Source: Trichoplax adhaerens (taxonomy: Eukaryota; Animalia; Placozoa). From it: 64,000 nucleotides of DNA. Of the stretch, positions 3,447 to 63,746 are shown piece by piece. The notes beneath the pieces are model-generated. The model saw only the letters and a list, made by a program, of their open reading frames with translations, was not told the DNA's origin and ran no database searches. The stretch is from assembly GCF_000150275.1 (NCBI RefSeq), contig NW_002060951.1, forward strand, positions 374,775 through 438,774. Direction: 5' to 3'. How positions within the stretch are numbered: the first letter of the stretch is position 1; the number at the start of each line of letters is the position of its first letter. A program made the translations under genes and the position numbers.

Positions 3447-6400
3447 ATGAAAAATAGCGACAAGCAACAACGCTCACCTAAATGTGCTCGCTGCCGCAAT
3501 CATGGGGTTATTTCTATCTTAAAAGGGCATAAACGTTATTGCCGTTGGCGCGATTGTACATGTGCAAAATGTATCCTGATTGCAGAAAGGCAAAGAGTTA
3601 TGGCTGCTCAAGTTGCGTTAAGGCGACAACAGGCACAAGAAGAAAATGAAGCAATTTACTTTAATTCAGCATCCAGTAATGCCACTAATACAGCCGCAGC
3701 ATCTAATATCCTCCCTTCGATCAATCACGATGGCAGCCATTGCCGTCAGGATAAAGAATCTATGGTGATCCATCACGGAATGAAACGCTTTAAAAGAGCA
3801 GATAGTCAAGATCATGATCGTCATGGTAAGTTAAACTTAGTAAGGTATAATAAGTAATCATCTTCAATATTAATCAGTAATGTATGTATTTATGACAAAA
3901 TAGTTGTTAATAATTATAAGTTAAGGTATAAGCTATATACTGCTATGTATTGGCCTGATTCCTGTTAGTAAATGCGACAATGTTGTTCAAATAGCTATCC
4001 AAGTAAATATGTGATGATGATGAACCGAAGTACTACTTTTAATGCGGTTAAAAAAATATTTCCTTCTGAGTGATTGCTCTATCAGTTGAAATATCGGGGG
4101 TAAAAGTTTTCCTCAACCGAAGTCATAAATGAACATATTTACAAAAGCATTTCGTTGAGGAATTCAGTAAAGAGAATTTATTTAAATTTGGTAACTGAAA
4201 TACATAATCACTGCACTTTAAACCTATCCTCGTAGTGTATTTACAATATTTACTTTTCTTAGTCATTAAAACAGACTGTAGAATAGCTTTAGTTTAATAA
4301 TCATTTTTACTTAAATCAGTGCCGTCGGCTTTCATGACTGAAAGAGAGTTACAAATTTAAAGATTTTATTAGTATGTTGCCACATATTAAAGCTAACGCA
4401 CACGTCTTAGATAATTTCAGTCGACCCCCTCCGGCCTTACTATTGAGCTATAACAATTGCTTGGCATGTTTTCAAAAGAAATATAAAACATCATTTGATT
4501 CTTCTTGCTGGTACCGCGTGCTGCAAGTCGATTGAAATAATAATTATCCCCTATGGCATCTAATTCAACATTACACAATATTGTCATCATATCTTGATTA
4601 ATGACGATAAAAGTATCAATCATATCTACTTTTTATACTATGTTAGTAACTTTTTCCTATTAATGATGATAGTTCATACTTACTGATAATACTAAGATTG
4701 GAAATTGATGTTTAGTCATCTATTATTTAGCAAGGTTATAAGTCAGGTGGGCTTAAGTTAACATCGTTGCCAATGTGGGTATATATTGTTTTACAATTTT
4801 TTTTATCTGATTCATTATATTCATTTCCAGTATGAAATAAAATTATATTAATACAATGAGTCAAAGATCTTTCCGTAGGTCGAACTGACTTCGTAGAGAT
4901 AGGGAGGGAGAGGAAGGGGAAAAGATATTATTAGTGTTCCAAGGCTTTCCGACTACCTTATCGATGATGCAAAATATTACTCATTTCTTTATGGTTTATA
5001 TATAATTTAGTTGATATTACCACTATTTCGTCTGAGAAATATTTTTGGTTATACAGCTGCTACAATACTCCTAATTGATACGTCAAGTAGTTTATAGATG
5101 GTGCGATAGGAATTGGATTGGTATACCGTTTAGTAGTATATGTTGTTCAGACTATGAAATGTACCTTTATAACCTGCAAATTACTATAAGAGAATCATGA
5201 AATCATTGCTGTTAAACATTTTCGCCAGAATTATGACTACTCTCGACAGCAGATAAGAATAGATTCAGTTTTTCACCTTGTCAACTTGTTTATCGTTAAT
5301 AATAATAGTGATTAGAATAAAAATTAAACAACTACAGCGGTTAACCATTGCAATCATTTTACGCTTTTCGGCGCTTCTGCCATATAAGATTTAATTCGCT
5401 GTCATTAATCCATTCTTATATCATAGCTTAAATCAAGTCAACTTTCTTAATGAGCAGAGTAGAGAAAGAATAATCTAGATTTATCGGTTTGACGGATTTA
5501 AATTTAAAAAACTGTGAAGTAAGTGCGTTTAGCCTAGTAACTAAACTTGATTGAATATTTAAAGATCTACGGAGACCTAGTAATACATGCTATTACTAAA
5601 CCAGACGTTTAAACATACAGTGTATATTAGAAAGCAATAATTTCAAAATTTTCCAACGCAGTATTTGTGGTTCGCCCTCCCTTTCTAATATCCTTCTAAT
5701 CCTACATAATTCTCTGAGATGATCGTTTGTTATTTTCAATCAACTCTGATACTCTGTTTAATTAAACAATGCGGTAGAAAACAATCATAGACCCCGTCAA
5801 GTTGGCCAGACAATCGAGTAGAGTTTAAATATTAATATAAATTGGATTAAAGGATTTAAATTTCACGTACATTGTTTATGATTATTTTGCTTGTTCCACC
5901 CGTTTTTCCTATACATTCTTCTCGTACATTGACTTACAAATCAGTTTATCATGTACGTATTCATCAGCCAGAATAAATTATATCTAAAGGATTAAACGAT
6001 GAGTACTAGATATCGACCATAATTCATATCTCAATTGTAAGTTGTAAACTATCTCAAATATTACTATGAAACTATAAGAACAGATTAGATAAAAGCAGAT
6101 CGTTTACTTGAATGAAAAGATTATTTGTCTAAACAGGTAAGAAATTGATGGCGTTAGGGCAGCCACACGATCTAGAACAACAAAATGTCGTATAAATTTT
6201 AACTTCGTCGATCAGCCTGAGGTGATATTCAAACACAAATGATCAACAATCTCTCGACAATTGTTTTACCAGGTGGTTAAACTTAATCAAGACAACAGAG
6301 ACAACATTACGTAAATTATACTTGCTATTATTTATTATATAATTAAGCCCTAACAATAAATCAAAATAGACACTATTACTTCATTTGTGATAGTTTTCAC

Positions 6401-9289
6401 AGAGGCCTAGGGGTGGAGTATACACACATTACCGTAGCTGCTGATTATCCATTTTTCTATAGTTATAGACATATCCAGTAAAAGTATGTCATAGCGATCA
6501 TACTGTTGTTGCACAATTCATTTTAACTTAGCAGAAAAATTAATGTAGTAAGACAGTCAAATGTTATGCCAATTAAATATGTTATTAGTCTAATTTTTAA
6601 CCTCAAGAAATTTCTCAGTTGTAGTCTTAACCGTAATTGTTAATAACCCTGGTTGTTAAATATTACCCTTGAAAGTATGAATATCATCATATCAGATCAT
6701 AAAATATATTGTATAGATAGTAGATGACTTCATTTCTCTTGTGAAATTACGACAACGTTGCTGTTGTTGCTGTTATAATTATATAATTTATTGTGGTTGT
6801 TCTGCCTTTAACAATAGTGTTGTTAAAGGAAATTGCAATGTAGTTACTTTGAATAGTAATATCGATACAATTTCAAATTCAAAAGTTTTCTAAACAGTAC
6901 CCTTACGATAAAAGAATCTACATTTTCTCGAATATTTCTGTCCTTAAACTAGATTAGAGTATGATGCAATCATCTTGGGATATTGTTTGCGATTTGAAAG
7001 TGGTTACAACATCAAGTAATTTTTTCTTAAAAATAGAGAGGGATAAAAATATGTTTTATGGACAGTAATAATTAATCTTTGATTAGTTTACGCTAACTGT
7101 CAAATATTTTCATATACTGCTTTATACCGCCACTTATCGCTATTTTGCTACGTCTTACTAGTGTAAGACGAAAAAAAGAAGGAAAAATTTCAATAACACC
7201 GGTGTTACTTCGACCGTGACCAACTTTTGTCCTTTCGGTCCTTTACCGTTTCGAAATGTAGTTAATACTAGACTAAGTTACCGTGGTTGAGAATTTAAAC
7301 GAGGTACGGATACTTTTCAATGACTAAAATCAATTTATCGCACCAATAGTATCTGAAGGGATTTATAATGGTAAAATTAAAGCTTTCTCTAAAGTCTATG
7401 AAATGCGAACGTTAATTAATATGAAAGAGTTCATAATTAGAGAAAAAATTGATAGCTAATGGAGATTATACTTAATTTAGGTCAATTATAGTATAAATCA
7501 TTTTATTAAGCGTTAAAATAGCTATATAAGATGTGTAATTACATCATACAAAGAAAACCTTATTTCATAAATGGTCAATTTAAAATGACGGCAATCAATT
7601 GATTTGAGTCTTTACAATCCTTAAAGTTACTATAGTAAGAAAGATGGATATCGTCTAAAACTCTTACTGTCCCATTAGAGTAGGCGTAATGTAGATGTTT
7701 GCTATGTTAGTTGTGGCTAGCCTCTTTAACAGCTCCATTTTATGCTCTATCGAAAAAGTAAGCATGATTTTGATAGTTTTATACTAAAGTACCATCACAA
7801 TCAATTGTATTCGTAGCTGACTGATGTAATCAAATTCTTCGCTTTCTCCGTTAGCTATTGCTACGCTTAGTACGCGTAGCAGATAGAATTTGGCTGTAAA
7901 TTCTAATTCAATCGACAGAATGAATGTTTAGAAACATTCAGTTAAAGAATGCAATTCGCTGATACTCTATTTTGACTCATTAAAATAACAGTCTGAACGT
8001 ATATAACATTATACAATCAAATAGTTGTCAAACAATACTGTTGTATACTAATTGTTTCTTGACATCGCCGCCTTTCTTTCTTTCAGCTTTTGTATGCCTG
8101 TCTTAACGGTTAGCGTGTTGTTGTCAACGTCTAACCAATATACTACCATCTATAGCCTGTCTCGATAAAAGCTATAGAAAGTAATTATTAATCCATCTCT
8201 ATTGTATCGAATCATTTTGCTATTGCACAAACAAATTACCGAAATTAAGCAAATGATAAACGAATTGACTACTGTTGACCAAGTCGTAAAAAAATCGACG
8301 ATATTCTCTGGACTGAAAATTATATATACAACACTACTAGCATGCCATCTAATACCCTTAATCACATATGACTCTATTCACTACTACTGTATTATTGACA
8401 GCACAAAATTAGAATGGCCCTGATTTGTATCTTCTTTCTTACCAGTATATCTTCGTTGCGATACCGTTTTCTTATTGCGCTACTGTGATATAAGTTTAAA
8501 AATAATAGGAGAAATTATTCAACAATCTCCTTCTTAACATAGCTTTTCTACCTGAAACTACTAAACTGAAGGTAGCATTCATTATTCTTTTAATCCTATT
8601 CCTTATATATATATTATTTTAATTTGATATGATTAGATTTAAAACGCACTCGTTTAAATGATAAAAGCGACGGGAGTGACGATGAAAAGATAGATAGCGA
8701 CTACTCAGATGAAAGTTCTACCAAGGATAGAAACAATTCAATTCTGTCACCTCAGCAGCAAACTAATGGAAATGGTGACAACAGCAATAGTAGCAAGTCC
8801 GATTCTAAAATGACATTGATGAATGGAAGTATGTTAGTTGGTGTCAACGGTGAAAATCGATCTCATGATTCTCCATTGAATGTTCTGTATCGTGTTTTTC
8901 CTCATCGCAATCGTAGTTTTCTTCAATTGATATTACAAGCTTGCAATGGCGATTTAGTTCAAGCCATCGAACAAATTAGTCGTAGTCCAATTAATCGTGG
9001 CTCCGGTTTACCACCATCGCAGTTGATTTCACCAACGACAGCACCCTATTTGGCTTCTTCATTTGTTCCACCAACATCCTTATCAGCAAGCAGTCAACCA
9101 ATGCGGTTATCTTATGGATCGGATAGTTTACTAACGATGGTGAATCCAAGTTATCCACCCCATCTGCCGCTAAACAATTTTACTGGATTTACATCACGCG
9201 ATATGCAGTCACAGCAAGTTTCTCATGCCTCGCAAGGTTTGCATTCACGCAATTGTTACCTTTGCAACCTTTATGGGCAACCAAAATAA
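3447..9289 (+). CDS. DMRTA: DMRT-family transcription factor with DM and DMA domains (DMRTA/dmrt4-5-like), ~343 aa; exons 3447-3825 and 8637-9289 (possible alternative last exon 9360-9391)
   Basis: Exon 1 encodes a complete DM zinc module [61 protein letters not shown]. Phase-1 donor G|GTAAG at 3825/3826 joins acceptor TTAG| at 8636 in frame with ORF 8810-9289, which has a DMA-type motif [36 protein letters not shown]. Confidence 0.9.
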
Positions 9290-10340
9290 TATTATTGAGC
9301 ATTTGATTAGAAAAATTGTACGAGTATCTGCAATTTATACTTTGTATTATTCTGTATAGTTCCAGGCCTAACAGCAGCAATGATGTACTGAAATCAACAA
9401 AAAGTGATACACAGTCATCCAAATATGAATATTGAAATGAACGAATTTATTACCGGCGTGGAAGAACAATCCAAAAATCGCTTAGATTTTACTCCAATAC
9501 AACCAACTTATCTTACAAATTTCTTAGTTTAATTAATTAGTCATAGCAAGAATGTATTTAGCGCTAAATGCTGATATCAATGAAATTTTATGATAGTCTT
9601 ATTATTGAGCTGATTGGATTTCTAGTAATATTAGCGGTATAGTTATAATAGTATTTAAGCATATCATTAGTACAGATTGATTCCAGTTTACGATAATGGG
9701 TACTGTATAATAATTATATAATTATCGTATCGGTTTTATATATTCTCTACAGAATATGATGGTTTTCCTTTGCCGGTATTTTATGGCTTAAGTTAAGACA
9801 TTGGTGTGTAGAGCCGTAGTCATACACATCTTTTCCTAAATTAGAGAATGGAACGCTGAATATTAACGCTTCTGTCATCAGTTTCAGCGCTGATGTGGCA
9901 AATCTTTTGAAAAGTCACAGTCACTGTGTAGTGTGTGCAGTCTAAATAATAGTCAGTCATTATATGATTATATTGCAATATCTGTCTATCTTTAAGTGCT
10001 AGAATAAGTTGAAACTGAGTGATTCTGCTAACTTTTTTTCATCAAATACTTCATTTTTATTAATATATTGCAATAATCCTGGCATGCAATGATTATTTTA
10101 ATCGAATTTAGTTATAGCAGTGGAATTATAGGAAATGCCATTGGTTTCGTAATTGTTATCAGCTTACGTACCGTAACCTATATACCATCAATAATTCTAT
10201 TAGGCACTGGATTTTTGCCATCTTATCTAGAAAAATTGATAGATTTAGCCCTTGATTATTATGTTCGCATTAATTATGGTGCCAATCGACATAAAAGTTT
10301 GTCAATCCTTGTAATATACATATGCATTACCTTATTCATT

Positions 10341-10390
10341 TATATATATATATATATATGTATATGTATATATGTGCATATATATATATT
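10341..10390. repeat. (TA)n microsatellite, imperfect
   Basis: tatatatatatatatatatgtatatgtatatatgtgcatatatatatatt read directly. Confidence 0.9.
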
Positions 10391-13300
10391 GACGGCCAAT
10401 ATATTTATCTTAAATATTATCCGAATATTTATCTGTATACAATTATATCTACCACAGTACAAGCTAATATACTCATCTATCTCATTTGAACATGGTTTTC
10501 TTTTAATCATATTATATTAACTATCATTTCTATTATTGCTGTTTCTCGGCTACAGCAATATAGCCAACTATAATCTGATCAAATGACTACCCTTCTATTT
10601 GCCATTTGATCACTTTAGATCATAATAAAAATATCAAATTAATTAAATTGCTATCAATCATTTCAATTATATTCCAAATAGATAGTACTGGTTAGGATAA
10701 CTTTGATAACATAACATTAAATAATGCAATTATTGAAATATAATGGTAATCAGTATGATAAGGAAACATATCCTTAGTATAATACGAAATTAAGTGGGAA
10801 GACGTAGACATTAAGCTAAATTTATTATAATATTATCTACCAGGATCTTAGCTTGCAAAGAGTGAGTTTATAGCTAGCACTTTATTCTTACTATCTAGTA
10901 TCCTGGATAACTCAAAAAACTGATGATTTTATCGTTATCAAAGAAGAGACCAAGCCACATCTATTTTCGATTGATAATGGTTAAAAACTCATTCATTACA
11001 GGAAGTTTACAGCTATATGGTACAGCAATGGTGTGCTATAGACTACAGTAAATAGTGAAGGAGAGTTGTACGTATAAGAGCATTGAGTTCTAATTGAAAT
11101 ATCGGCTGCAAGAAGAAGGAATAGCTTCTCCATAGTTTAGAACACAAGCCAAATATAGTTTGTCGTGTATAGCAATTACGGTTTCCGATATTTTCTACAG
11201 TCGTTTGCTATTACATAGCCTGTTATGGTATATGTTGTATCTAATCCTTCAGTGTTGTTTTCTAATTGATTCATATCCTCTCACTCCTTCATCATCTCAC
11301 ACAATTTAGTCTAGCCTTGCAACACGCGCGATTGCTGCTTTAACATTACCTTTCCTAAGTAAGCAAATACATATATTCCGCTGTTCTTTCTCTCACTATT
11401 TTCCTCGTTCACATACTACCTTTCAGATTATAATGGCTATTGCTGACCTACACCCAAGGCTAGAAATCAATCTCACAGAACCCTCAACATCACAATAAGC
11501 ACAGGATTTCGTATAAGGGAATTACTCTGACAGTGAGCAAGTTGCAGATGACACAGCCACAACAGCAAATTAATATTGTAAAAGTCTTAAAATAGTAACT
11601 AAATATACTTCCTTTTTAGCCGTTGGCCAGGAAATTAGATTTAATGAAAATATAAATCAGGGACTTGGTTTATCTTTTCTAGTATTTTAAATTTGCCTAT
11701 GTTCATTTCATTCTTAAAAGTATGTACGGCAATTGCGCACTAATTTGCCTCAGGATAATTTTTTGAAAATTCTTTGCTGTAATAAAACTATAGCTGAAAA
11801 ATTTTATCTAATTTGCATCGTTGACTCCAATTAAGCTGTAATGTTTTTAGTCGATAAATAATAGAATTAATAACATGTCAAGGGTAAAGCGAAAATATAA
11901 CTTATCTGCCCAGATCACATGTCGTAAATATCAGGGCTATTTACCTCAAAAGAGCAAACAATTGCAAATTTTGCTTAAGTTCGGATTGAAATATGTCAAT
12001 ATAACATATAATACTACTTTCGAACCTGTATTATTTAACCCATTCGTCGGAATTTAACTTATTCGAGCTATTCATTATATAGTTAGTAAACTACGGACAG
12101 TGCTGATGAGTGAAGTTCTGTAAGCAACTCTGTAACTGTGTCTATTAAGATTACTTCAAAGCTATGAGATATTTGTCACCGTAATCAAAATCGTAGTTGC
12201 GGTGGTAACACTGACTACTGTATCTAGTCTCACGACGTAAGGTAAATGGTGCATGAAGATATCGTAGCAAAAATGGTAGATTATCATAATTACACAACAC
12301 TGACTGTTTATCGTGAGAGCGATGGTGTTAATCGTGCCAATAATACACTCAATGTTCTATATTTACGGTGGTTTTATAGATGTTAGATCAATTCAAATAA
12401 AGAAGCAAAGTTAGCTAGAGATATTCTGGACAAAAATTACCATGTTGAATACAATAGAATGCACTTGAAACCTTTGAACACTTATCAAAAAACACTTTCC
12501 CTTTCAGAATTATGCAATCCGGATTAGAATTACAATGCTTCGCTAATAAGATAAAACCTTCAAATTCGCGAAACTGCGAGGGTATGCGAAAACCTTAAGC
12601 TCGCTGGAAATAAAAATTAACCTAGTCAATATTGGATTGATTAAGAGGTTTATCCAGCTATTAATACAGTAATAGCTTTATGGCAGTAAAATTAATGACA
12701 TTAATTAGATTAGCTTCTATTGATCTTTGCTGAATAATACAGCATATAAAGGCAGTAATTACTTGCCTAGATAAAACATCAGTTTTTGAAGTTAATCTCA
12801 AATTTATTGATAATCCCTAAATTTGGATAGATAGGAATCTTGATACATATAAGTAATCGTAGATAGGCTGGATGTAACGGAGGCCTTCTGTTAGGCACTT
12901 CGCATGAGTTGTCTTCTTTGATTGGACGAAAATGCTCAAATCTATTTCTTTTTACGCCATTTTGAAATGACTATTTAAGCTATGACACTCGTACATATTT
13001 ACTTTATTATTATTAAGAAGCTATACAAATGAAATTCTAGTCATTATCTACTAAAAGTGACGTTAAGCTTATTATAGCATTACAGCAGAAAGAGAGATGT
13101 TACTTATAACTACAGAACTATAGTTGGGAAGTTACTAACTATATGGATAATCCGAATAGAGTAGTTAAAAATTCTGTATCCTTAGTGCAAACGATTACTT
13201 CTTTGTTATATCAGGGAGATTGTACGTAAACGTCCCTTTGTAAAGAGTTTCGCATAATAACCCTGAATGGATTTAGTATATTAGTTTTGCTACCTATTAT

Positions 13301-16300
13301 AATTAAAAGCGTTATAAAAATGCATCTATCGCTTAATAGAAGTAAAAAAGCATCGGAGATTTAAAATTAAATTACTTAAAATTCTGTTAATAGATAGAAC
13401 GCTACAATAGGCACTGATGATCTTATATTAATTGCCTGCAAGCAAAGATTATTTATAAAGCGTATCCACTTGTCCATTTAATAACAGGGAAGTATCGTTA
13501 AACCTTTTCAGAATATGGAATGTACATTGTACATGTTAACAGTAGTTAAATAAGCTTTTAAAGTTTAAGAATAATCATGCCAGAATATCTTTATTGTTCA
13601 GATATTTATTGCTAGTATAGCTGATTTCATCGTCATGTTTTAAAATAATCTATAAGTATAACGCTAATTCTAATCAATGAAAGTATATAAAATATAACAT
13701 ATTTATCATTATATGAAATATATGGTAATTATATAATTAGAATGCAAATTAATAAACTTACGATTGTTCTCACCAATAATATAATTTGATGCCGAGAATA
13801 ATTTTGATTCGCAAATAATTTAATAATATTGGAATCGTGAAATATCAATGCTAGAAATAACGCAACAAACGGCAATTAAGCTAGTGCGTTAACATTCTAA
13901 TATAGAAAAATTTAAGAGAATTGCATTATGGAAAATAATTATTAATTTAATTTCTATTTATCTACATGACTATACTATCACATGCAACTTTTCCATTATT
14001 AATTCTAAGCAACTAGTATAATGAATGCAAAGAAGTTAGGAATTCTTTGTAAGAATATTTATAAAAATGATATTGAGTTGATGTGCTATTGCATATGCAT
14101 TTTATGGCCCTTGTTAAGGATTACTTATAGTCAATTTGATTCATCAATAAACAATTGTGTATTTTATACTGTATGAGAAGACAATTTTAATTTCAATCGA
14201 TTGCAATATTTTCAATTCAATTAGTACACAATCTTGGAATATATTTAAAGATATCCTAAAGAACAGCTGCTTAAGGGTGGCATCCATCATTCAGATATTC
14301 TAGCTCAAGTCGTAATTTAGCAAAGACAGAGCCAAGTATCTCATTGTTATAGTAGTACGAAATAAGTTGTAAAGATGGAGAGGTTGAGATTAATAAGTGG
14401 TACAGCAGTGCTTAAAATTATTAATTGCCAACAGTATGAGAATTAAATTTATGAATCATTAATGCTGAAGCGACGGAGAAGAGGTATCAGAGTGCAAGCT
14501 GTTTCATTCTAAATATAATCTTAAATTAGTAGCTAAGCTCTGGTGTTTAATCCAACTGATTACAGTATTGACGCAACAAGCAGCAGTAAAATATTTACAT
14601 TTGAGAGATTAAAGAAACAACACACTACAATCTCTTGAATGATTTGAGCTAAAGACATTCCTAAAGATTCAAAAGTCGTCTATTCATAAGTATATTCTTG
14701 CGCAATGTGCATGTGTCACGGTCATCAAAATAACTTAGATATGTGTGTGTAGTTTATGATAACATTTTGTTTTTAAACTTATTAGAAGTATGAACTACTA
14801 CTTTAGGAATTGTTATTGTTAGTAATAAACTAAGTTTATTATAATATTATGACGATATAGCAATATGTTACAAATAAGTACCGAGAATATAGGAGTTTGG
14901 TATAACTTGCAATCGAAGTAGGCTTACGTGTGAAATTGTCTATTACCCCGAATGTCCGTATTTGATAATTTAATCGTAATAACATGTTGGCTATTGAAAT
15001 ACGTTGATAGCATAGTAAATATGTTATAACGACTGAAAAAGTATATAAGTAGGATTGTGATCAATAAAAAGTGGTTCAGGTTAAGGCGAAGTTGTGTGAG
15101 AGTTATATACCGTATACTGTGTTGAGCGAGTTAGTGTGTACTTTGCAAGAATTCCAATCACTATACTGTAGGCTAGGGAAGTAGTTCTGCGGATTGAGGT
15201 AAAGTTTATTATAAGTACTGTCTTGTTTTCTTGAGTTGCAAGGGTAGTTGTGGCAGCATGCTTATGAAATATCTTTGGGAAATAACGCAAGCTATAACAG
15301 CTACTTCTTTATTTAGTTCTTCATATTATTAGGTATTATTTAAAATTTAGAAATTATAAAACCTTTTTCGCTGAACACATAAAATCTCTAGAAATATTCT
15401 TTATTCTATAGACGTTTCTAATTCCACTGCTAGCTTAGTTTACAATTAGTCATGACTAGACCAGACTTTAGCAGCATAGTTCTGCACTAAGCTGATCTAA
15501 CCAGCAAGAAATAGTTACTCACCTGCCGCATTGCAAAGGAGGAAGATTCTATTTGTAGATTCAATAGCTAGACAATGTTTCATTATTTTCGAATTCTTAT
15601 TCAATTATATTCGAATTAAGTTCATAAGTTCTTAAATATCACCCATCAATATTAAAATCAATTAGTTTAGCATTATTTTATCGATTTAATATTTATTTCA
15701 TATATACCAAGAACTTTAGAGTAGATAGACAGATAGAAATTCTCTCAGAAGCATTTTGTTTTTAATATTTTACTGCGTCCATCGTTGGTATTTAGATAAA
15801 TCTGTGTGTTACAGCAGTAAGTTCTCTTCCTTTAATTAGCATCTAGAAGGTCCATATGTCCTAGGCCATTTTTATTAAATTATTAAGATTTTACTAATAA
15901 TTTTAAAGCCAGTAGCTGTAAATTAATTTTAAGAGTAAATATAATAATATCTCTATTATATGAAGGTGGAAAATGATAACTGATGGTGCATTTTTTATTT
16001 ATTGTCGTATTAGAATATACATATATAAACAGCGCCTCGAGGATGCTAGTGATCTTTTTATTGCGTTGAATCGGAGCGGCAATTGCGTACTGTTTTTGCA
16101 TAATAATGTATACCAAAAGCTTAATATGAATGCCTATGCAAAAGGTATACACGTATATATATAAATCACCAAAAATAGTCCGAAAGAATGAAATTGAAAA
16201 TCAGTGAGGAGAAGGAGTAAATTGAGATAGAATTACTGAAGTTTAGTTACTGAGGATTAATAGCAATCTTCATATTCTTAAATCTATTTTACATTATGGG

Positions 16301-22139: not shown

Positions 22140-22229
22140 TGTTACGGCCATTCTTAGGAATGGCCACAGTCTTAGCATTAGCCGTGGCCAACCTTAAGGA
22201 TAAAATCATTCTTAGGAATAGCCGTAACA
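22140..22229. mobile_element. 90-bp MITE-like element with TGT...ACA termini, ~23-bp imperfect TIRs and a 4-bp TAAT flanking duplication
   Basis: Left end TGTTACGGCCATTCTTAGGAATG; reverse complement of right end TGTTACGGCTATTCCTAAGAATG (20/23 identical). TAAT at 22136-22139 and 22230-22233. GC-richer than its flanks. Confidence 0.55.
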
Positions 22230-42205: not shown

Positions 42206-42233
42206 CATACTCTCCGATTTGGAAAATTCAAGA

Positions 42234-47550: not shown

Positions 47551-49811
<2,261 letters not shown>

Positions 49812-50419: not shown

Positions 50420-53094
50420 CTGGCTGTTATTGCTGGCCATCCATCTGGGTGGCTAATTAGCCATAAGAAAGCCGTTGATGATGCATTTGCGTTGCATACA
50501 GTTTTAGCGTATGATTCGCAACAAAATGTATGCACTGATATAGGCAAATATTCCTATCTGGATATTCTGTTTGATTTACGGAAACCTCGCATTCCTGCCA
50601 ATAGAAACTTGGGTAGTGACCCTACAATACCAAAGGTACAGTTCTTTTTTTATGGTGTCTTGCTGAAACTGTACTGTATGATTGCTTAATAGCACTTTAT
50701 GCTATTATTAATCGTAAATACTAGTAGAACTCTCGCTCGTGATACTTTACGTACTGTACTAGTACTTTTACTTTACATCATCTCGTGTGCAGTGTATGTA
50801 TATAATTTTCATAAAAATATAATAAATACTGTCATTAATTACTAATGATTACGGAATTATTGTCTTATTATTCTTTATACAAGAAAAAGAAACGTAAGAG
50901 GAAGGCACCTGTAAACATTGGAGAGCTTCAACAGCTACAGTATCATAAGAAGGTATGAAATATGCGTTATAGAATATGGACTGTTTAGCTTAATATATGA
51001 CGTAAGCCATTAATTTAATGTGAATCTGTGCTAGGCAAGTTTTGCTCTAAAATTTAAAAGTTTATTCTATTTTTTGATTACTTATTGATAAAGGCGATAA
51101 TTACTCTACCAAATCGTGTAGTTAGCCGTGAATTGATTATTTCTTAGCCGCTTAACTAAATTGTGGCGTGTGCTTTCAAGAATTCAGCGACAATTATAGC
51201 ATAAGTGTAAAACTTATAATTATTACTGTATTTATTTTATAGGTTAGGAATTGCATCGTTGCGAGCTATCGACAAATATTGGATTCTAGTTTAATAACCG
51301 GTTATTTTCTGGAAGGTGGAAATATGCGTAATAATACTGAATCTTTCAACTCTGAGGGGGAGTTACAACAACATACACTTTTACCATCAGGTATAACCAC
51401 AATATTCGTTGCCATTTATTGCGTGTTTAGTATTCGCCTAAATCGGTTGAGATGCGCTAGACTACTCAGTTTTTTTTAATTGTTGTATATTAAAATAAGC
51501 AGATACTTTCAATATTTGTAGAGGGATCTTCATGCCTATTATCACAATTATGCAGCTTATCGAAAATTACTACTAATGTTGACGATTGCAATCCTTTCTT
51601 AGTAACTGAGAAAAATATTTGTAAGTTTCTTAAACTGATATAAGAGATCATATAAGGTGTAAGATTGCATGTTATTAGCTATGTTTAGCTTGATATTATT
51701 TATTTTTCTTACTATTTCTATTTTAGGCAAAATTTCAAACCCGAATTTTTATGCGTTTAATCGGCTAATTAAGAATACTCTCCTTCAGCCGATTGCCATT
51801 GAAGTAGCCGGTGGAAAATACTTTGTACCGCCGAAAAGCAAATTTGTAATGTCAGATATTTCTTGTCTGGATGCTTTACTGAAAGGCAAGTATATGACTA
51901 TAGCTACTGTATTTATCACTTGTTACTGTTACCAAGACTTTGTAAGTATAAATGTAAGTACTGCCAGTACTGCTATTGCTATATGATGTAGAAATAGCTT
52001 ATGTATGTTACTTCTCAGTATAGGATTTGTTTACTTTAATCGTCATGCTTCGTTCCTTTAGCAAAGCCTAAAGATGGTTATGACTTGATAGTAATCGATC
52101 CTCCTTGGGAAAATAAGTCAGCTAAGAGAGGCAGTCAGTATGTAGCGTGATGTGATCAAAATTACAACTTTAACTAAGTGTGATTTGAAAGCAAAGAATT
52201 GCTTGCTGTTAACTACCTTAAAATGACTATGTTTATAGATATCATTGGTTAACGACCGATCAGTTACTTCAGTTACCCATCACAGAATTACTGGCCAGAC
52301 ATGGACTTGTCGTGGTATGGATTACTAACAAACAGAAATTGTTAAGGGATGTCAGAGATGTATTGTTTCGAGAATGGAAATTAATTGAAATAGGAGAATG
52401 GCATTGGATTAAGGCATGAAGGATAAGAATTCTGCGCTTTAAATTAGAAAGTAAAATTATAAAAATGCTTACTTTCTTATTTTTTTCTGTTAGCTGACAA
52501 CTGGCGGTGAATTTGTATATGATCTCGACTCTAGTCACAAGAAACCATATGAAATTTTGCTGATTGGGGTGAAATCAGGGCTATCTGAAGATCTCCCAAG
52601 TGCATGTAGTTCAGAGTTACCTGAAAGTATTGCCGCTTTTCCTAAACATAACGTTATTTGCAGTATCCCATCATTGGTTCATTCACATAAGCCTCCTCTT
52701 GATGGTAAATCGATCGGTTTAATTTATACTATTACTAGAAATTTCTAAACGAGTACAAGCTCGATTTTGGATGCCTTTCATATGATTAGTATCCATTTTA
52801 GATTTGAAAATATTTTACTGCAGGTATATTCGCTCGTTTTATCCGTGAACAACCTAACTGCTTGGAAATGTTTGCTAGGAGTTTGATTCCTCATTGGACA
52901 AGTTGGGGAAATGAGGTCTGTGATTCTAAAAAAATTTTATATTATTTAATGTGGCAAACGTTCTTGATTCGTCCTTAGAGCTAGTACCAACTTTTGTTAA
53001 GTTTTAGTTAGGCTGTATTGGTTGTAATAAAGTTTAAATTCTCTTGTAGGTCCTTAAATTGCAGAATTCAGTATACTTCAAGAAAATACTGTAG
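50420..53094 (+). CDS. METTL4: METTL4 N6-adenine methyltransferase (MT-A70 family), ~429 aa; exons 50420-50635, 50884-50952, 51243-51390, 51522-51620, 51727-51885, 52062-52137, 52239-52413, 52494-52704, 52824-52915, 53050-53094; start uncertain (CTG at 50420)
   Basis: Catalytic DLIVIDPPWENKS; PPKSKFVMSDISC; VVVWITN; WHWIK|LTTGGEFV; HKKPYE; HSHKPPL; CLEMFARSLIPHWTSWGNE|VLK. N-terminal GWLISH and KRKRK...GEL...YH motifs resemble METTL4. Confidence 0.9.
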
Positions 53095-54179
53095 TTTTTC
53101 ATTAGGAGAAGGCTGGATAGAATTATGTAACTACCAATAAGGATCCTTTCATTGAAATTGGACGAGGATTGTTTATTAATCTATATCTATCTGATCTGAT
53201 ACCTTACTGTAAATACTGTAGATTACTAAATTATTGATAATACCAAATTCTGCCCTCTTTTTAGCTTTCCAAGAAAGAATGATGAGTTGTGTAAAGTTAT
53301 TAACACACTTGAATTGCTTATCAAGCGTTAAGAGATTCTTATGACTGTACTGTATATTATCCTGTTCTGCGTATGAGACATCACTGTACTTTTAAATCGC
53401 TTTTCTGATACTGTCATATCGTAATTTCGGTGGTACAGTGATTTACTACTGTAACTGTATCTTATTCTATGGCATGGGTCTACTGTATTGTGAACTTCTT
53501 GCTCTGTTGCGCTCGAGATGAAGAACAGTTAGTTTATGTACAACATATCTTCATTGGCTGATCGCTTCAAAAGTGATTCACGGAAGAAGATTGAAATCGA
53601 TATACATTATTCAAGTGTAATAAACTGCGCAGTAATTTTCTGTGCATTGCTCTAGAAAGCAAATCAACTCTATCTTCATAATGATTTCGAAAATTTTTTT
53701 CTCCAGCAAATGGAAATTGCCAAACTCTATCTGATGCTAGAGTATAGTCAAGGAAAATTGACTGCATATCCTTGTGAATTATGGCGCATTTATTGGTATT
53801 TGTAGTTTGTACTGTAGTGAAATATTAAAACATTGCAACTGTCAAGAATTACTAGATACTTTGCCAGTAAGGTATCTAGTCCGCTGCAGAAGTACAGTGA
53901 GGTCAAACTTTCTTTTAAATGGTGTAAATCTGACTCTTTCAAAAGGAGAGTCTGTTGCAACTTTAAATTGCTATCCTAGCTCGCGCGGTTTGCTTTTGAG
54001 TTAGGATAAAATAGGGAAAAGCTCTTTTACACCTTTCTCTATCCCTTTCATAATGTGTCTTTAATGCAGTTAAAATATTATATTTGCTGTTAATATTAAA
54101 AAAAATAAATACTTGGTGTTTACGTCATCGTTTGAATGCTTAAGATTACTTAGGATTGTACACCTGTCGATTGTTTGCT

Positions 54180-54250
54180 TCAGTACTATACTGTACAGTA
54201 CAGTACAGTACAGTGCTGTACTGTAGACTGTGTACTGTACACTGTACGGA
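54180..54250. repeat. (TACAG/CTGTA)n array upstream of RANBP3
   Basis: cagtactatactgtacagtacagtacagtacagtgctgtactgtagactgtgtactgtacactgtac. Confidence 0.8.
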
Positions 54251-54314
54251 TTCGCGCCTGGCCATAGCAATCTGACGTTGCCCGCCGTTACTGTATTCCA
54301 GTAACTCATCCAGT

Positions 54315-54850: not shown

Positions 54851-54945
54851 TAAGGCAATTTGCTTCTTATTCATACACAGTGTGTTTATGTCCAGGAGCT
54901 ATACGACGAGGCTCGCAATTGAAAGTAAAAAATTTCCTTGATAAA

Positions 54946-57900
54946 ATGTCAGACGAGGTCGAGAAAGTAGAGGATAGAGCTGAAGGTATGTACTATATTA
55001 ATGATGAAGATCGTTGCAGATTAGATTATTTAATGGCTTGGAATATTCACCGTAAGATTGTTCCAGATGTGTCTAGTGTGTACGCTAGCACTGCACCACA
55101 TTACCATCTATGGAGTAGGTCGATAGATGGTAATCTCTTTTCAGCATATTAAATTAAAGCACAAACAACAGTGAAATTGATTGATTCTACACTAATATAT
55201 CGTCTCAATTGGCATTGCTGATGCTACTGCTGTACTCTTTTATGACTATGAAAGAGTAAAAGATTCTAGAAAACCTCAATTTACCAATTAATGGACTGTA
55301 GTATGTATCTATTGTACTGGCTCTTTACTGCTTGGCTGTAAGATCAAAGCATTCGTCCTGTGTATAGTACAGCCGGAAAAATAGCGCTTCTAGCTTGGGT
55401 AGCAATGCTTTGAATCATAGAATATGCGTTTACATCTTGTCTGTCCAATAGTACCATTTCCTATTATTGAAAAGTTGTAGTAGTAGAATAAAATTCTATT
55501 CACTGAACTTGCATTGATAATGATATGTCCAGCGCGTTTCATTCCAGCCATTATACTGTATAAATTTATTGTAAATGGACAGCACGGTATAGTAGTTTAC
55601 TACGTAATCCCTTGAAATGATGCGCTTTGTGACTACAGTTCCTACCTAAATGCTCGTTAAGCTGAGATCAAATATCATTTTCATGTTTCATTGTTTGGAT
55701 GTACTATATAGTATACACAATTTATAAATACAAGGATATTTAAAAATATTCTCTAAAAATGTACTATCATTTTTAGTAGCGGAGTCGAATGAAGATCACG
55801 TCGGAAAGGTAAGAATCTCTGAATAAACACTTTGTTCAAAAATTATTCCCAACTAATTAATGCCTGATTTGGATGGTCAATTTTACTGGCGTAGCTGTAT
55901 CATATATGCTTAAACTTACTATACATAAAAGGAAACTTGCATAGCAGTGATCGTTAGCTATACAATGAGTAATTTTTTCTTCATTTGCGAGAGACTGTAC
56001 AGTATATCGTAAAGTTCTCAACCTTTCTCTTTCTCGTCATGCAACTCAACTTTAAAATTAGCGTATTCGATGAATTAGAACGTACTCGTACCTTCAACTA
56101 TACACATAATAGTCCTTCATGTTAGTATACAAAAATTCGATAATTATATTATAATACTATTATAAATTTTAAATTTTTGTACTTTGTATGGATCTTCAGA
56201 TATCTACGGGTAGGTGCTCTTTTTATGCACTATGCTCTAGTTACAGCATGATAGCAAACGATGTGCAGTATTAGCTTTGACTTTAACAATCCAACATTCT
56301 TACTATTGGACTGAAGTAAGTTAGTGATCGTTGACTAACTTTAAGTGGGAACGTACTGTATATCGCAGTCTTTAGACTTGTGAACCGTAAAACTTCATTT
56401 TACAAAGTTGCTGAAATACTGTATAATAAATTGAAGTAAATTTGTAATCCATAAGCTCATAGGATTCTGAGGATAACACAAATCAAATGGATAATTGTTT
56501 GACTGAGTATCGTTGTGCTACTATAGACTGTCTACAACATGAATATGTCAGTACTGTTATGATAATACTATCACGCCATACAATTGTAAATTTGTGCACA
56601 AATTCATGAAATAGTAATGCGAAGAAATTTCATGCCTACGATATAAATAGCCATTTACGGGATGTAGGAGTATACTCTTCTCACAGTGGTTAAGTTCAAA
56701 GTAATGTAAAATTTTGAGAAAAATTAATAAATTATTATCGTTTTAATTTAATTACCTACTTTTGCAAATGCGGACCAATATATATGCAGCGAAAACTTGA
56801 AGAAGAAGAAGAAGTAAAAGGTGCGACTAGTCTTAACAAATAGATAAACAAAGTAAAAATGTTTAACAACCAAATGGATCTTTGATTTGGTTGAGATATA
56901 ATATTTACTTTCTAATAATAAGGTCGTGATCATTTTATAGAAAACAACCAAGAGACGGAAGGTCCTGTGATGTTTACTTCACAGAATACAGAATATTACA
57001 ATTTTTTTTTATTAGACGTACTTAAGTGTTCACCATTTACGTGATAATGCCGAGTTATGGACGGCAATGCATTATTATTAATATTAATGCTATCTTTTTT
57101 GGATGTTTAGAATGTAAACGTAAGAAAACTTCGCCTGACGAAGGTGAAACTGGTAAGGATTTGATAATTACATCAGTGGTACACCATCATTTGCGTATTA
57201 TCTTTTCTTAATCCTATAAAATATCTAATATCTTTAAATGCTTTAAATGTTATAAAAGAAAAAGAAGTTTCTGCGATAGGTATAAAATATTGACTATAGC
57301 TTGCTGACATATCATTATGACATGATTACATTAGAAATTTACGATTAAACTTTTATTAACGGAGTTAGCCTACTAGATAACAGTATTTGATGATAATGTT
57401 TTTAATTAATTTAGTAGCCTCTATTACATTAGTGATTTTATTTTTGCACCTATATTATCGTACTAAGTTAACATACTGCAGTAAATACTTTAAACATAAT
57501 TTTCAACATTTCTGATCACACTTAACGGATACTGCTAAGTTTATCCTTATGCAAATCGTAGGATCTGATATGGCGAGTGGTTTCTTCGCTCCATCCCGAC
57601 TAAAACCAGCAGCTATTCCTGTTATGCAATTTACTAACTTAACAAGTATATGCTAATGATGTTTTTGTAAACTTAAATTTATAATACTGTTGCTTATCAG
57701 TGATGTACTTTTACTCATTGCAGTTAGTAAAATTATATGAAAGTTTGCTTTAGTAATAAGCTTTATGCAACTGCACATTACTTCGTTACTACCTACTAAT
57801 GTTGATAACTATTCTTGTAGGCGAATCATCCAGTTCCTTCGGTGGCTCTGCATGGAAAGAAGCATTGGTATGTTAAAAAATTTTACTAAATATGGATACA

Positions 57901-59200
57901 AATTTTATAAATTTACAATTATTATGTGTTTAATTATATAAGAAACTAATTTTATTGCAGAATATCAAGCAACCATTCTCATTCATGAGTTGCCATAGTG
58001 AGAGTGTGAAGAGTTCTAGCAGTAACCAGGATAATGATAATCTACCAACAAAGGGCGACAATTTTGCTTTAAACGGTGATGATATAACGAAAGAAAACAT
58101 TTTTCAGAAGTTTCTAAAAAAAAATGATTCCCAAAATGCGAACTCAAAAAGCGAAACTAGTGAAAATAATCCATCGAAATCCGATACCAAAGTATGAGAC
58201 GTAGGAATTAGAAAGTTATAGCGGCAAATGCATGATGTTGATATTATCCCAATTTACTTATATACAATAATGCATTGTTTACATCTATAAAGATTACGGA
58301 AGAATCAGACCCGGAAAAAACACAGAAAATTAGCACTGAAGTTCAAGAAAGTAGCAAAGACGATGCAGAAAAGAACGGTAACACATAGCTTCTTTTTGCA
58401 TTACGTGCAAATGTTGAAGAAGAATCTGTCGAATTATTGTTATTTATTAGATACTGTACACTCTAACGTAGTAATGCTCGACTATGGTTGAATATGTAGA
58501 ACCTAGCAGTTCCAGTTTTGAGAAATCTCTGCCAATTGGAAGTACGAAACTCGATAGAAAATATGAAGAAGTTCCAGTGGTCACTGGCGAAGAACACGAA
58601 ACACAAATGATAGAGGTATTGGTCTTTACATATTGAAATTAGACTATGCTGTTGTCAGAAGTTTTTTTCACTTTTTTGTACTCTTATTATTAGATGCCTT
58701 GTCAATTATATAAGTTTGTACCATCTTCGAAAGTATGGCAAGAATGTGGCAGAGGAATTTTACATTTAAATGATTCAAAATCGCCAGATAATGAAGTATT
58801 GCAATCTCGAATAGGTACATTTTCTTATGAAAGATATAAGCTATTGCTACGAAAATGGTGGACCAATGTTAATTTCATTTGTTCTTAATGTACCCTTTTG
58901 TACTAGTTATTAGGGCTAACGCTACCCATCGAGTTATTCTTAATACAAAAGTATGGCCGAAGATGAAAGCTGAAAAAGCGAATAGTACATCACTACGTTT
59001 TACGGCATATGATATGAACTCTGAAGTTTGTATCTATTTAATTCAGGTAACACAGCATCAATAGTACCAGATACTGGAGTTATCAAAGTACACATAAATT
59101 ATAATATACATTTTTTAAAATTTTGATTATTTAGTCTCGAAATTCGGATCTAATCAAACAACTGCAACAAGCCATCGATGTTCGCACTAGATCACTCTAA
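54946..59200 (+). CDS. RANBP3: Ran-binding protein 3-like (NLS, low-complexity middle, C-terminal RanBD), ~351 aa; exons 54946-54985, 55777(or 55780)-55808, 56790-56820, 56941-56961, 57111-57152, 57562-57645, 57821-57867, 57961-58191, 58293-58377, 58500-58615, 58694-58814, 58907-59046, 59135-59200
   Basis: RanBD: EEVPVVTGEEHE..MPCQLYKF..WQECGRGILHLND..QSRIVIRANATHRVILNTKVWPKMKAEKA. N-terminal KRK..KRKK and RLKP motifs. The exon chain is phase-consistent; the small 5' exons are less certain. Confidence 0.8.
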
Positions 59201-60337: not shown

Positions 60338-63300
60338 TCATGTATTTCTCGCTGCAAATGACACTTTATCGTATATTTCTGAAAAAGCATCTTTGCAGTT
60401 TGGAATGCTATCTCTTAACTTATTATACAACGTGTGATCAAACATCTTGTAAAATTCTTCTCTGGTCATGTACGAATCCGCATATAGCATTTGAAATCTG
60501 AGATAAATATTAGAATGCTTTAATTGAAGTTTACGGGACGAGCAAGTTTATTAAAATACAGTACTTTAAAAGATTTTACCCTTTAACACTCGTAACAAAA
60601 TGTTCAATTCTTCGGATAGTTTCTTTTGCGACGAAATTTTCAACTTTAGGCTCACCGTAAGCTCCTATATCAACATACATTTCTTCCACCTTAGATGCCG
60701 GTTTGACGAATCCAGGAACTTTATATAATTTCATAGGACAAAGCCATAACGGATAATTCTGAAATAAAAATATATAATATACGAATACCAATGCGTTATA
60801 GCGAGTTATTTGCTTCCATCGGATTGCTGAGAGCTACTAGCTATCATTTGCTTTACCATATGTAAATGAGAGACTAAATAGTCAACTACAATGACTGAAG
60901 GTTTATTAATGTTAATATGTCAATTACTGTGCCAATTGTATAGTTCTGCCGTGTTAGAGCGATAGCAAGGCATTAACGTAACTATCAGTGTTTTCAGTTA
61001 GGCTTTGCTTAAAAATTTTAAGCCCTAACTGCGCCAAAGCTATCAATTAATTCTTAGTACTACAGTTTAATATATATATTTAGTATCAACACTAATTAAC
61101 TTACTTGAAATTCTTTTTGAAATACGTCTAACGACTCGTTGAGACGTTGCATCGGCACAAGCATGTCTTGAACAATTTGGTGTTTCTCATACAGTTTTTT
61201 AATTGCTTCGGTTTGGGTTAATTTTAATAAAGAAATTTTTGGAGGTGTCATCCAACCAAAAAGATAGCGAAAAATTACGTTGTTACCAAATGGAATAATA
61301 TCCTATAGAACATGTATATCGTAAACTAGTTAGAATACCTATCGTTGGTTAACTGCAATGAAATAAATTAAGCTAATTACTATGGCAAATTTAAAGTATC
61401 TCAACTACAGTCCTATACAAGAAGCTAACTGCTGATATCATCATGCCTGTATCTCCCAGAAAATACTACGACTGTGTCGATGATAATAATGTCGTAAAGG
61501 AATATATTCCGTCTTGGGCCCTCCGCGCAAAATATTTTCAACATATTTATAAAACCATGGTTTCCAATAATCGCCAATACGGTTAATCTACATATACAAT
61601 GTTGCAAAGAATAGCTTATCTTTACAAAGTTTAAATATTATTAGCTATACCGAACACACAACCATTATATTTATAGAAAACTGTTGCTTATCTCATAAAA
61701 TCAAGAATAATACAGTAGTCATATCTCATGGTTGGATAAGATAGCCTTGGTTCGACAGTAGATTGTAATACTGTAACTGAGATATATTAATAATTAATAT
61801 GAATTGAGAATGCTCACTTTGTCTGGTTCTACATTGTCGGTCATGGTCCCAGTCATAATAACTGCCTCTTCAGAACTATACATCAACCCCTCCACAAAAT
61901 CGTTAGTTTCATCATTGGATGCCTCTTCAAATAACTTTATGCTTTCACCGCGGCTATGACTAGGTTGATAATTCAGCTTGACATATTTCTTTGCAGGTAC
62001 AATTTTGATTTCTGCGCTTACAAGAAAGCCTAGCGTTCCATACGACCAGGGTACAGCATAGAATAGATCAGAATTCTCCTTCTACAAGTGATTATATGCA
62101 AAGTGAGAATCTCTCTTACAGTATAAAGTGTAAGCTATTAACCTTTAAAGTAAAAGATATTATGTAGTATACAATATGTATCCTCACTCCTTATTTTGCA
62201 TACCTCATTAGCAACGACCACACGACCATCACTAAGCACAAGCTCATACGATACACAAATATGTTGAAATAATCCATGAACATGAGAGGAACTTTCAACC
62301 CCAGTGCCCATAATCAGACCACCTGTTCAGGTATATCATTTAGCTCATGATTTGAAATGTGGCATGTAGTATGTAGCCTTTGCTACATACTTTTGTAATG
62401 TTGAAGTTGCAGTTATAGAGTGCTAATAAATATTTATCAGTGCTCACCTACTGTTAAATCATCGAGTTCAGGTAACACAGCCAAAGTCCAACCTAGAGGA
62501 TTAAGCGTTGCGCTAATTTGCCCCATGGTAGCTAACGGTTCTACGGTGATAGTTTGACGTTTGGTGTCTATATTTAATATATCTACCAAATTTACTGCAA
62601 TTTGATGAGATCTTTTCTTATATTGCCCAGGCCTTAAAGAAACATTCATCCAGCCAGGTCTAGCAGTACACATTTTCTTACGTGGTTGTGAGTTTTGCCA
62701 TTGCTTAATCTGATTTTGGACATTTTCGACTCTCGATTGATGTTGTTTAGGAGCGCTTCTCATGGCAAAAATTATCTTGTTGCGAATAAAGAAATAGATA
62801 TCGAAGAAGAAGGAAGCAGGCAGGAGGAATAGAATGACAAAAACATAGCGATACTTGATGACAAGATACTCCATGCCAAGCGATCTAAGATGAAGTACGA
62901 ATCCAATCAACCCAACCGCAATTACGGCCGTTGTTAAATCGATAGGACTAGCGTCTAATAGATTCAATCAATGTAAGATTGATACAATAATTATAATTAA
63001 TAGCTTAGAGATTATCAACAAGCAAAATGACAGAATTGCAATCACGTAAAAGTAATGGAAGAGATTGGGAAGAACACTGAGGAGGTTTTACTTTAACACC
63101 TCAAGCTACAACGAACATCAGATGGATGTTGAGGTGGGTACATGGTTCTAACAGTAGGTGGATTTGTATAGTATAAATCAATGACTCATACTGCATTTGA
63201 CACCGGAAATGAAGGATATCTTGCCATCTTCTATCTTAAGTTGTATCATTGTTTTTATTTAGCTGAAAAATCTAGAGTATGCTACAGTAAAATAGCAGGA

Positions 63301-63746
63301 ATAGTGTTAGTGTATTTACGAGTATTACACAAATTTAGTAGCACAGGAACTTCATGCATTGATGACGCATATGCGCAGAGTAAACTACTTTGATACTTGT
63401 AGGTTGCAGCGTTTTTTTTACATTGACCGGCATGGAAGGCTAGCAAAGTAATCTCTAATAATGCACAGTACATGCAGAGATGATACACAGTTTGCATAAA
63501 CTAACTACTAGCCAGTAAGACGCGACGTCATAAAGCAAGGGATAAGCCGTGTTAACCTCCTGTGCCTAATGATTCATTTTCAAATTACCAATTATTTAAT
63601 GTATGCGTATGTTATTCATGCAGAAATTGTTCGTTTGGCTTGTAATTGATTGATTTCAGCAGTTGAAAGCTAATCACTTTCAAATTATTCGAATAGCACA
63701 ACATTATTAGAATATTAGCAGATAATGTGTTATTACCTAAGGTCAT
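60338..63746 (-). CDS. DHCR24: Delta(24)-sterol reductase DHCR24/seladin-1, ~525 aa; exons 63746-63737, 62954-62448, 62322-62204, 62081-61818, 61587-61447, 61302-61105, 60758-60580, 60497-60338
   Basis: [18 protein letters not shown]; MCTARPGW; [10 protein letters not shown]; [24 protein letters not shown] (FAD-binding); [13 protein letters not shown]; [12 protein letters not shown]; YPLWLCP; VDIGAYGEP; GFQMLYAD; EIYDKV. The start is placed in a 10-nt coding exon (caccATGACCTTAG|GTAAT). Confidence 0.93.

Follow-up and report, generated by a model that had tools for sequence, protein, structure and literature searches.

A DMRT-ELAV gene block in Trichoplax adhaerens that mirrors human 1p32-33, 9p21 and 19p13 and probably predates the bilaterians

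The window considered here is a stretch of 64,000 nucleotides from the placozoan Trichoplax adhaerens (C1406:374775-438774; contig NW_002060951.1), part of a 3.21-Mb scaffold in an assembly of 105.6 Mb and 1414 scaffolds, over which the genome-wide copy counts given below were made. It has a G+C content of 31%, and its genes contain introns. Eight genes are found within 59.5 kb (3447-62967), in the order DMRT, DMRT, OMA1, CAAP1, ELAV, METTL4, RANBP3 and DHCR24, and a scan for codon usage, for which only flank genes served as the training set, revealed no coding-like stretches between them. A first-pass annotation of the window had listed these genes as direct neighbours within 60 kb, and had drawn its evolutionary conclusions on the supposition that the DNA might be placozoan; both points are borne out. 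On its left the window continues into a longer run of 13 genes in ~100 kb, the full order of which is MTAP, PRKCSH, FAF1, two calcyphosins, a DMRT gene with DM and DMA domains, a DMRT gene with a DM domain only, OMA1, CAAP1, ELAV, METTL4, RANBP3 and DHCR24. Several of these families are also linked in vertebrates and other deuterostomes, and we consider it likely that the Trichoplax block is a surviving piece of a neighbourhood that predates the split between placozoans and bilaterians.

Domain and homologue searches were carried out exon by exon on stop-free segments, and with database proteins. DMRT gene 1 (3447..9289, plus strand) consists of a DM exon at 3447-3854 and a DMA exon at 8633-9286, with the stop codon at 9287-9289. 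Its DM zinc-module domain (3423-3854; Pfam E 1.3e-25) and C-terminal DMA motif (8633-9286; E 1.9e-19) lie 5 kb apart; this combination characterizes the DMRTA type, and it is the sole DM-linked DMA in the genome. DMRT gene 2 (30881..36082, plus strand) possesses a DM exon at 30866-31423 (Pfam E 4.8e-25) and a second exon at 35444-36079, in which Pfam reveals no known domain and no DMA. Having a DM domain only, it counts as a DMRT gene, and a DMRTA-type assignment is not supported. Between the two genes the DM regions show 83% identity, whereas the C-terminal exons are unrelated. Two of the three DM loci in the genome are found in the window; the third (C1377:180050-180175) covers just 42 of the 47 profile positions. 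A DMA-like motif of 28.6 bits is also present at C1409:1730063-1730158, with no DM domain nearby on that scaffold.

The two DMRT genes are separated by a gene-free stretch of ~21 kb without coding-like sequence (9530..30860, no strand); no stop-free segment with a positive coding score occurs between 9529 and 29959, nor in the adjoining flank segment (L018), into which a second gene-free stretch of 13 kb extends upstream of DMRT gene 1. The two DMRT genes with their 13-kb and 21-kb gene-free stretches thereby span ~46 kb, and 26 kb is enough to hold the six genes that follow. In the scan of the window and its flanks, gene-free stretches were found around the DMRT genes only.

A contig of Trichoplax sp. 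H2 shows 98-99% identity to the window over 22 kb, and independent gene calls on it adjoin one another as Ran_BP1, MT-A70, a protein with three RRMs, CAAP1 and M48. The last of these corresponds in the window to an OMA1-type M48 metallopeptidase gene (37574..40760, minus strand; exons 40536-40760, 39640-39945, 38608-38856, 38270-38404, 38001-38177 and 37577-37852). Exon 38270-38404 contains the zinc motif HEMAH, and Pfam Peptidase_M48 is found at 38.7 bits, above its cut-off; the last exon gives 21.4 bits with the same profile, the H2 gene call carries PF01435, and the atlas match is to M48 at the family level. The exons have no close relative in the PDB, and the placement in the OMA1 (M48C) clade over other M48 peptidases, based for that reason on a likeness to human OMA1 that includes the WLSTHPSH motif, is tentative. 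CAAP1 (42213..44153, plus strand; TRIADDRAFT_58836, 255 amino acids) has main exons at 43153-43413 and 43710-44150, and a short first exon near 42213, the position of which comes from the H2 gene call. The TRIADDRAFT_58836 protein, located at 43153-44150, reaches 37.7 bits with PF15335 (cut-off 25), whereas a single exon alone stays under the cut-off. With CAAP1 as a rare marker for the neighbourhood in other phyla, an exon search and a two-sequence alignment search yielded no homologues other than the Trichoplax protein itself and a placozoan-like fragment from a contig of 2.5 kb.

ELAV (47551..49799, minus strand) is encoded by two exons, of which exon 1 (48894-49799) specifies RRM1, RRM2 and the hinge, and exon 2 (47554-47841) RRM3. 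The three RRMs (Pfam RRM_1 E 2.1e-39 and 1.6e-19), with the hinge between the second and third, place it in the ELAV/Hu family; the best 120 database matches are all ELAV-like, at 57-67% identity over RRM1-2, and the gene is present in a single copy in the genome. A homologue with 75-76% identity (P0004) is found on contigs too short to show its neighbours. The adjacent METTL4-type MT-A70 methyltransferase gene lies on the plus strand at 50838..53803, a span mapped from the H2 gene call (390 amino acids, PF05063). Four of its exons were verified (52040-52147, 52222-52416, 52494-52745 and 52808-52975); Pfam MT-A70 is found on all four, the first of which carries the DPPW motif. Among solved structures the best match is Arabidopsis METTL4 (7cv6, E 4.9e-6), and METTL3 and METTL14 are absent from the structure-database matches of these exons.

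RANBP3 (54946..59200, plus strand) was likewise mapped from an H2 gene call (364 amino acids, PF00638 Ran_BP1), and its Ran-binding domain (RanBD) exons lie within 58694-58885 and 58873-59061. The sole clear PDB matches of both are human RANBP3 (2y8f, 2y8g and 2crf; E 3e-7 to 7e-6), which favours RANBP3 over RANBP1, RANBP2 and NUP50. The last gene, probably DHCR24 (60338..62967, minus strand; exons 62440-62967, 62141-62326, 61797-62081, 61099-61302, 60579-60833 and 60341-60547), occurs once in the genome. A Trichoplax protein, TRIADDRAFT_50623, has been placed in the DHCR24 clade (PMC3124498); that published protein is not tied directly to this locus. FAD_binding_4 is found on two of the exons, both times under the cut-off, the atlas puts one exon in the FAD-oxidase/ALO clan, and the exons have no match in the PDB. 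At the exon level the gene resembles human DHCR24. CAAP1 and RANBP3, which the first-pass annotation had singled out as its weak points, both hold on the PF15335 score and the exclusive PDB matches given above; the other assignments held too, those to the OMA1 clade and to DHCR24 as probable ones.

The flanks were covered for 100 kb on each side of the window. Outward from DMRT gene 1, the 13-kb gene-free stretch is followed by the two calcyphosins, FAF1, PRKCSH and MTAP; with these genes directly upstream of the DMRT pair, DMRT is flanked by FAF1 and ELAV. The calcyphosin genes stand in tandem on one strand (L017:403-1993 and L017:6023-7513, together C1406:355177-362287), and their PDB matches are CAPSL and CAPS; the first copy, for which one exon was searched, is nearer to human CAPSL than to CAPS. 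FAF1 (L016:2787-8174) is recognized by its UAS domain (2ec4, E 2e-9), by Pfam FAF1 at 27.1 bits (cut-off 27) together with UBX, and by exons that by eye are UBA-like and ubiquitin-like. PRKCSH yields 36.8 bits with PF13015 and its protein ends in HDEL, while MTAP has human MTAP as its best match (1cb0, E 2.5e-42). Beyond MTAP are found a Med26/TFIIS-N gene, ALKBH7 (4qkd, E 1e-9), a MutS homologue, NDUFB7 (E 8.6e-26), a ZFYVE9/16-family gene with FYVE and SARA_C domains, a HECT ligase and a TTC39 family gene (C1406:270-274 kb). A parallel with ZFYVE16-MSH3 was dropped, the MutS homologue not being assignable to a subfamily. On the right, only a G-protein-coupled receptor is recognizable up to ~C1406:465 kb, and from there ~465000-538774 (L021-L028) reads N.

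The compact half of the window is further marked by repeats in its promoter regions. The 9-mer GTACAGTAC occurs in 44 copies in the window against 0.3 expected, forming palindromic (TACAG/CTGTA)n arrays at 41386-42715, 48635-48692, 49910-50073 and 54193-54645. These make up three clusters: two fall in divergent promoter regions, that of OMA1/CAAP1 and that of ELAV/METTL4, and the third precedes RANBP3, while the DMRT half of the window is free of them. A tandem repeat (54315-54851) with three copies of a 188-bp unit and 86% matches stands beside the arrays, immediately before the start of RANBP3. The arrays might correspond to the Mutator-terminal-repeat loop-anchor motif reported at placozoan promoter hubs (Kim et al. 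2025, PMC12221973).

The human map against which the block is read is as follows. ELAVL4, DMRTA2 and FAF1 are consecutive at 1p33-32.3, as are MTAP, CDKN2A, CDKN2B, DMRTA1 and ELAVL2 at 9p21, where CAAP1 follows after a few more genes. PRKCSH is next to ELAVL3 at 19p13.2, CAPS next to RANBP3 at 19p13.3 with ALKBH7 ~0.4 Mb off, and CAPSL near RANBP3L at 5p13; TTC39A, ZFYVE9, DHCR24 and OMA1 belong to 1p32, NDUFB7 to 19p13 and METTL4 to 18p11. On this map, 12 of the 13 MTAP-to-DHCR24 genes have their counterparts in a single paralogon set in human (1p31-33, 9p21, 19p13 and the chromosome 5 genes CAPSL, RANBP3L and FAF2). The first-pass annotation was right to link the block to the human 1p32/9p21/19p13 paralogon, and the linkage is denser than was claimed there, with MTAP, PRKCSH, FAF1 and two calcyphosins added upstream. 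Like human 9p21, Trichoplax has MTAP on the DMRT side away from ELAV. Unlike the vertebrates it has one unduplicated copy of the block in ~100 kb, with two calcyphosins between FAF1 and the DMRT genes, and OMA1 and CAAP1 between the DMRT genes and ELAV. A CDKN2 gene was not found in the Trichoplax block.

Part of this arrangement has been described from the other side. The gene groups dmrt4-elavl2-caap1 and dmrt5-elavl4-faf1 are conserved from fish to human in a study confined to vertebrates (PMC7689362; Front Genet 2020). Compared with these, dmrt5 being DMRTA2 and dmrt4 DMRTA1, the families of the Trichoplax block are linked likewise, with DMRT between FAF1 and ELAV and with CAAP1 on the ELAV side. 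In a survey without a non-bilaterian, Mawaribuchi et al. (2019; PMC6737965) found that one amphioxus scaffold carries elavl close to dmrt2/3, that dmrt4/5 of the acorn worm Saccoglossus has cdkn2 and faf genes close by, and that Aplysia has ttc39 close to dmrt93B. They also reported that dmrt4/5 and dmrt93B stand in tandem across bilaterians, and that elavl shows four-fold paralogy in gar. Trichoplax too has a same-strand tandem DMRT pair with FAF, ELAV and TTC39 members near it. Its pair could be either the counterpart of dmrt4/5 and dmrt93B or a placozoan duplication, the DM regions being 83% identical and DMA being confined to gene 1. FAF1, DMRT, CAAP1 and ELAV, which lie within 77 kb in Trichoplax, are accordingly families that are also linked in vertebrates (PMC7689362) and in amphioxus and Saccoglossus (PMC6737965). 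The gene identities, their order and their match to the published vertebrate and deuterostome syntenies are direct observations. In the literature searched, no paper was found to carry the DMRT-ELAV-FAF1 linkage to a placozoan or other non-bilaterian; the vertebrate and deuterostome half is published (PMC7689362, PMC6737965), and the non-bilaterian extension appears to be the new part.

Two observations in other animals touch on the neighbours of ELAV and DHCR24. In the clam Mya arenaria (L008, CP111024.1:48370210-48412072) a gene of the M14 cytosolic-carboxypeptidase type (Pepdidase_M14_N and Peptidase_M14) lies 1.3 kb upstream of ELAV, and is the only neighbour shown on that contig. In human, AGBL4 adjoins ELAVL4, and the carboxypeptidase and ELAV may perhaps be another old neighbour pair; both such genes of Trichoplax are on another scaffold. 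Human USP24 lies near DHCR24 at 1p32.3. In the supplement to PMC10719294, an ultraconserved sea-anemone element (Nematostella chr1:2674734-2674836) is located 81 bp from the ELAVL4-like gene NVE8968, which places that gene at 2.67 Mb of chr1, and a second ultraconserved element is found in a USP24 intron at 6.56 Mb of the same chromosome; DMRT positions are not given there.

One critical question is whether the genes are closer together than common chromosomal ancestry would lead one to expect. Srivastava et al. in 2008 reportedly described conserved linkage between Trichoplax and human, and Simakov et al. in 2022 are said to have defined metazoan ancestral linkage groups. Since common chromosomes are already known, the fair null is a shuffle within one ancestral linkage group. 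These frameworks predict a common chromosome, not close neighbours, whereas the Trichoplax block mirrors several immediate human adjacencies, namely FAF1/DMRTA2/ELAVL4, DMRTA1/ELAVL2, PRKCSH/ELAVL3 and CAPS/RANBP3. For the triple FAF1, DMRTA and ELAV, which is fixed by the literature, a hand calculation of its occurrence within 8 genes gives P ~3 x (8/G)^2, or ~1e-3 for a linkage group of G=400 genes. When the testable ancient neighbours of human DMRTA, ELAVL and CAAP1 were checked blind, 4 of ~8 (FAF1, MTAP, CAAP1 and PRKCSH) were found in a 10-gene span (binomial P, worked out by hand, ~3e-5 to 4e-4). In a rough simulation of 15 random genes per linkage group, where a near pair has <=3 genes between its members in any of four paralogons, a group of 400 yields a mean of 2.6-3.1 near pairs and at least 9, the number counted in the Trichoplax block, at P 0.002-0.008, the human positions being in part general background. 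On these rough nulls, which put the core at P ~1e-3 to 1e-5, the closeness of the block genes is probably real but mosaic.

Several points weigh against an ancestral neighbourhood and have to be set beside these figures. With a linkage group of 200 genes the simulation gives at least nine near pairs in 8-15% of runs (P 0.08-0.15), and the pair count suffers from ascertainment bias, since apparent linkage was the reason for choosing the window. Beyond the positions given in the two dmrt papers, the human map used is for the most part general background. METTL4, as the first-pass annotation had already noted, is the exception, its human gene at 18p11 lying outside the paralogon. In human, PLAA, TIMM44, ECSIT and AGBL-type genes lie close to CAAP1, ELAVL1, ELAVL3 and ELAVL4, and in Trichoplax the PLAA, TIMM44, ECSIT and AGBL/CCP-type genes are on other scaffolds, not in the block; HOOK is elsewhere in the genome, and KANK was not found in it. 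Taken furthest, the argument would be that only the linkage group is conserved, and that closeness within 60-100 kb is chance scrambling picked out by pattern-seeking; the smaller simulated group and the four negative a priori neighbour checks speak for this, as does the 8 Mb of human 1p32 over which the eight genes of the first-pass annotation are distributed. It is nevertheless difficult to reconcile with FAF1-DMRT-ELAV lying in 8 genes and 77 kb (P ~1e-3 to 5e-3 within a single linkage group), a probability that MTAP, CAAP1 and PRKCSH reduce by further orders of magnitude, and with the independent recurrences in other bilaterians (PMC6737965), and we regard it as very unlikely.

The favoured reading is that of a surviving ancestral neighbourhood. 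Its core would have been FAF1-DMRT-ELAV, flanked by MTAP and CAAP1, and two vertebrate genome duplications would then have spread it over human 1p32-33, 9p21, 19p13 and parts of chromosome 5, leaving the same relative arrangement in vertebrate FAF1-DMRTA2-ELAVL4 and MTAP-(CDKN2A/B)-DMRTA1-ELAVL2-CAAP1. The first-pass annotation had proposed that the DMRT-ELAV neighbourhood is older than the bilaterians. From gene order this is probably so, in that the placozoan and deuterostome data agree, and it is on these two that the claim rests. Its further suggestion, that the compact locus may approximate an ancestral arrangement, has to be set beside the mosaic conservation, with PLAA, TIMM44, ECSIT and AGBL-type genes on other scaffolds.

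Why the block has persisted is a separate matter. We tentatively propose, at somewhat less than even probability, that the cis-regulatory landscape of DMRT holds it together, as in the genomic-regulatory-block or 'bystander' model. This landscape would be wide and would reach past the small housekeeping neighbours; breaks inside the block would be selected against because the landscape spans those neighbours. Gene-free stretches such as those of 13 kb and 21 kb at the DMRT genes, in a compact genome, are typical of developmental regulators that have such a landscape. Irimia et al. (2012; PMC3514665) describe conserved microsyntenic pairs of ancestral origin, and genomic regulatory blocks, with Otx-Ehbp1 from placozoans to human as an example. 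The Trichoplax block resembles them in having a developmental factor kept by unrelated bystanders for >600 million years, with gene-poor DNA around the factor; Dmrt, Elav, FAF1 and MTAP are not named in the main text of that paper. The difference is that no conserved non-coding elements or enhancer tests are on record for the DMRT-ELAV block outside vertebrates. DMRTA2 is cited among the genes that have ancestral human-zebrafish enhancers acting across bystanders (PMC7049698), and distal promoter-enhancer contacts exist in Trichoplax (Kim et al. 2025, PMC12221973).

The regulatory explanation has to contend with the finding, in the same contact study, that most Trichoplax contacts are housekeeping promoter-promoter hubs and that 7-10% are between a promoter and a distal enhancer (PMC12221973). 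This is congruent with the block being a passive relic, ancestral but with nothing holding it: placozoan and vertebrate genomes would rearrange slowly, and some ancestral neighbourhoods would for that reason survive by chance. The mosaic conservation and the unrelated housekeeping genes interleaved among the block genes fit such a relic as well. It accounts less readily for the recurrence of FAF, ELAV and TTC39 linkages to DMRT in vertebrates (two paralogons), amphioxus, Saccoglossus and Aplysia, and for gene-free stretches situated exactly at the DMRT genes. From the enhancer-jumping and promoter-hub evidence together we therefore hold passive survival, like regulatory constraint, to be quite possible while falling a little short of an even chance. 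A third possibility is functional co-regulation, in which DMRT and ELAV would have common enhancers or a chromatin domain in neural-like peptidergic progenitors. It can draw on the action of DMRTA and ELAVL genes in bilaterian neural development. It also finds support in Elav marking placozoan peptidergic progenitors with neurogenesis signatures (PMC10580291), but Dmrt is not mentioned in that paper's main text. OMA1 and CAAP1 moreover intervene between the DMRT genes and ELAV, and ELAV has a 0.5-kb divergent promoter region in common with METTL4, with the (TACAG)n arrays typical of compact genes that the DMRT half lacks; we hold co-regulation to be improbable.

The first-pass annotation had remarked that a link between DMRT and ELAV would be striking in an animal without neurons. 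This requires softening: as Elav marks peptidergic progenitors in placozoans (PMC10580291), the presence of ELAV in Trichoplax is not surprising in itself, and the present analysis reveals no functional link between DMRT and ELAV. The boldest version of the favoured reading would be that FAF1-DMRT-ELAV, along with MTAP and CAAP1, forms a genomic regulatory block older than the split of placozoans and bilaterians. In it a DMRT landscape extending over the neighbouring genes would have been in place before neurons, would have constrained this segment of the chromosome for >600 million years and might couple DMRT and ELAV in the neurogenic-like progenitors of placozoans; we consider this unlikely.

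The block is a further instance of a known phenomenon, deeply conserved microsynteny around a developmental gene, and it leaves knowledge of the individual genes unchanged. It amounts to an unduplicated 100-kb version of the human 9p21 MTAP/CDKN2A/DMRTA1 and 1p32-33 FAF1/DMRTA2/ELAVL4 intervals. Should it hold in cnidarians and in other placozoans, it would become a well-defined and testable example of microsynteny conserved over a great evolutionary depth at a developmental regulator. If our reading is true, it would aid in reconstructing the pre-duplication order of the vertebrate paralogon, and it would offer a compact model for the regulatory reach of DMRT across its neighbours, for which Micro-C, transposase-accessible chromatin (ATAC) and single-cell data exist for four placozoan species.

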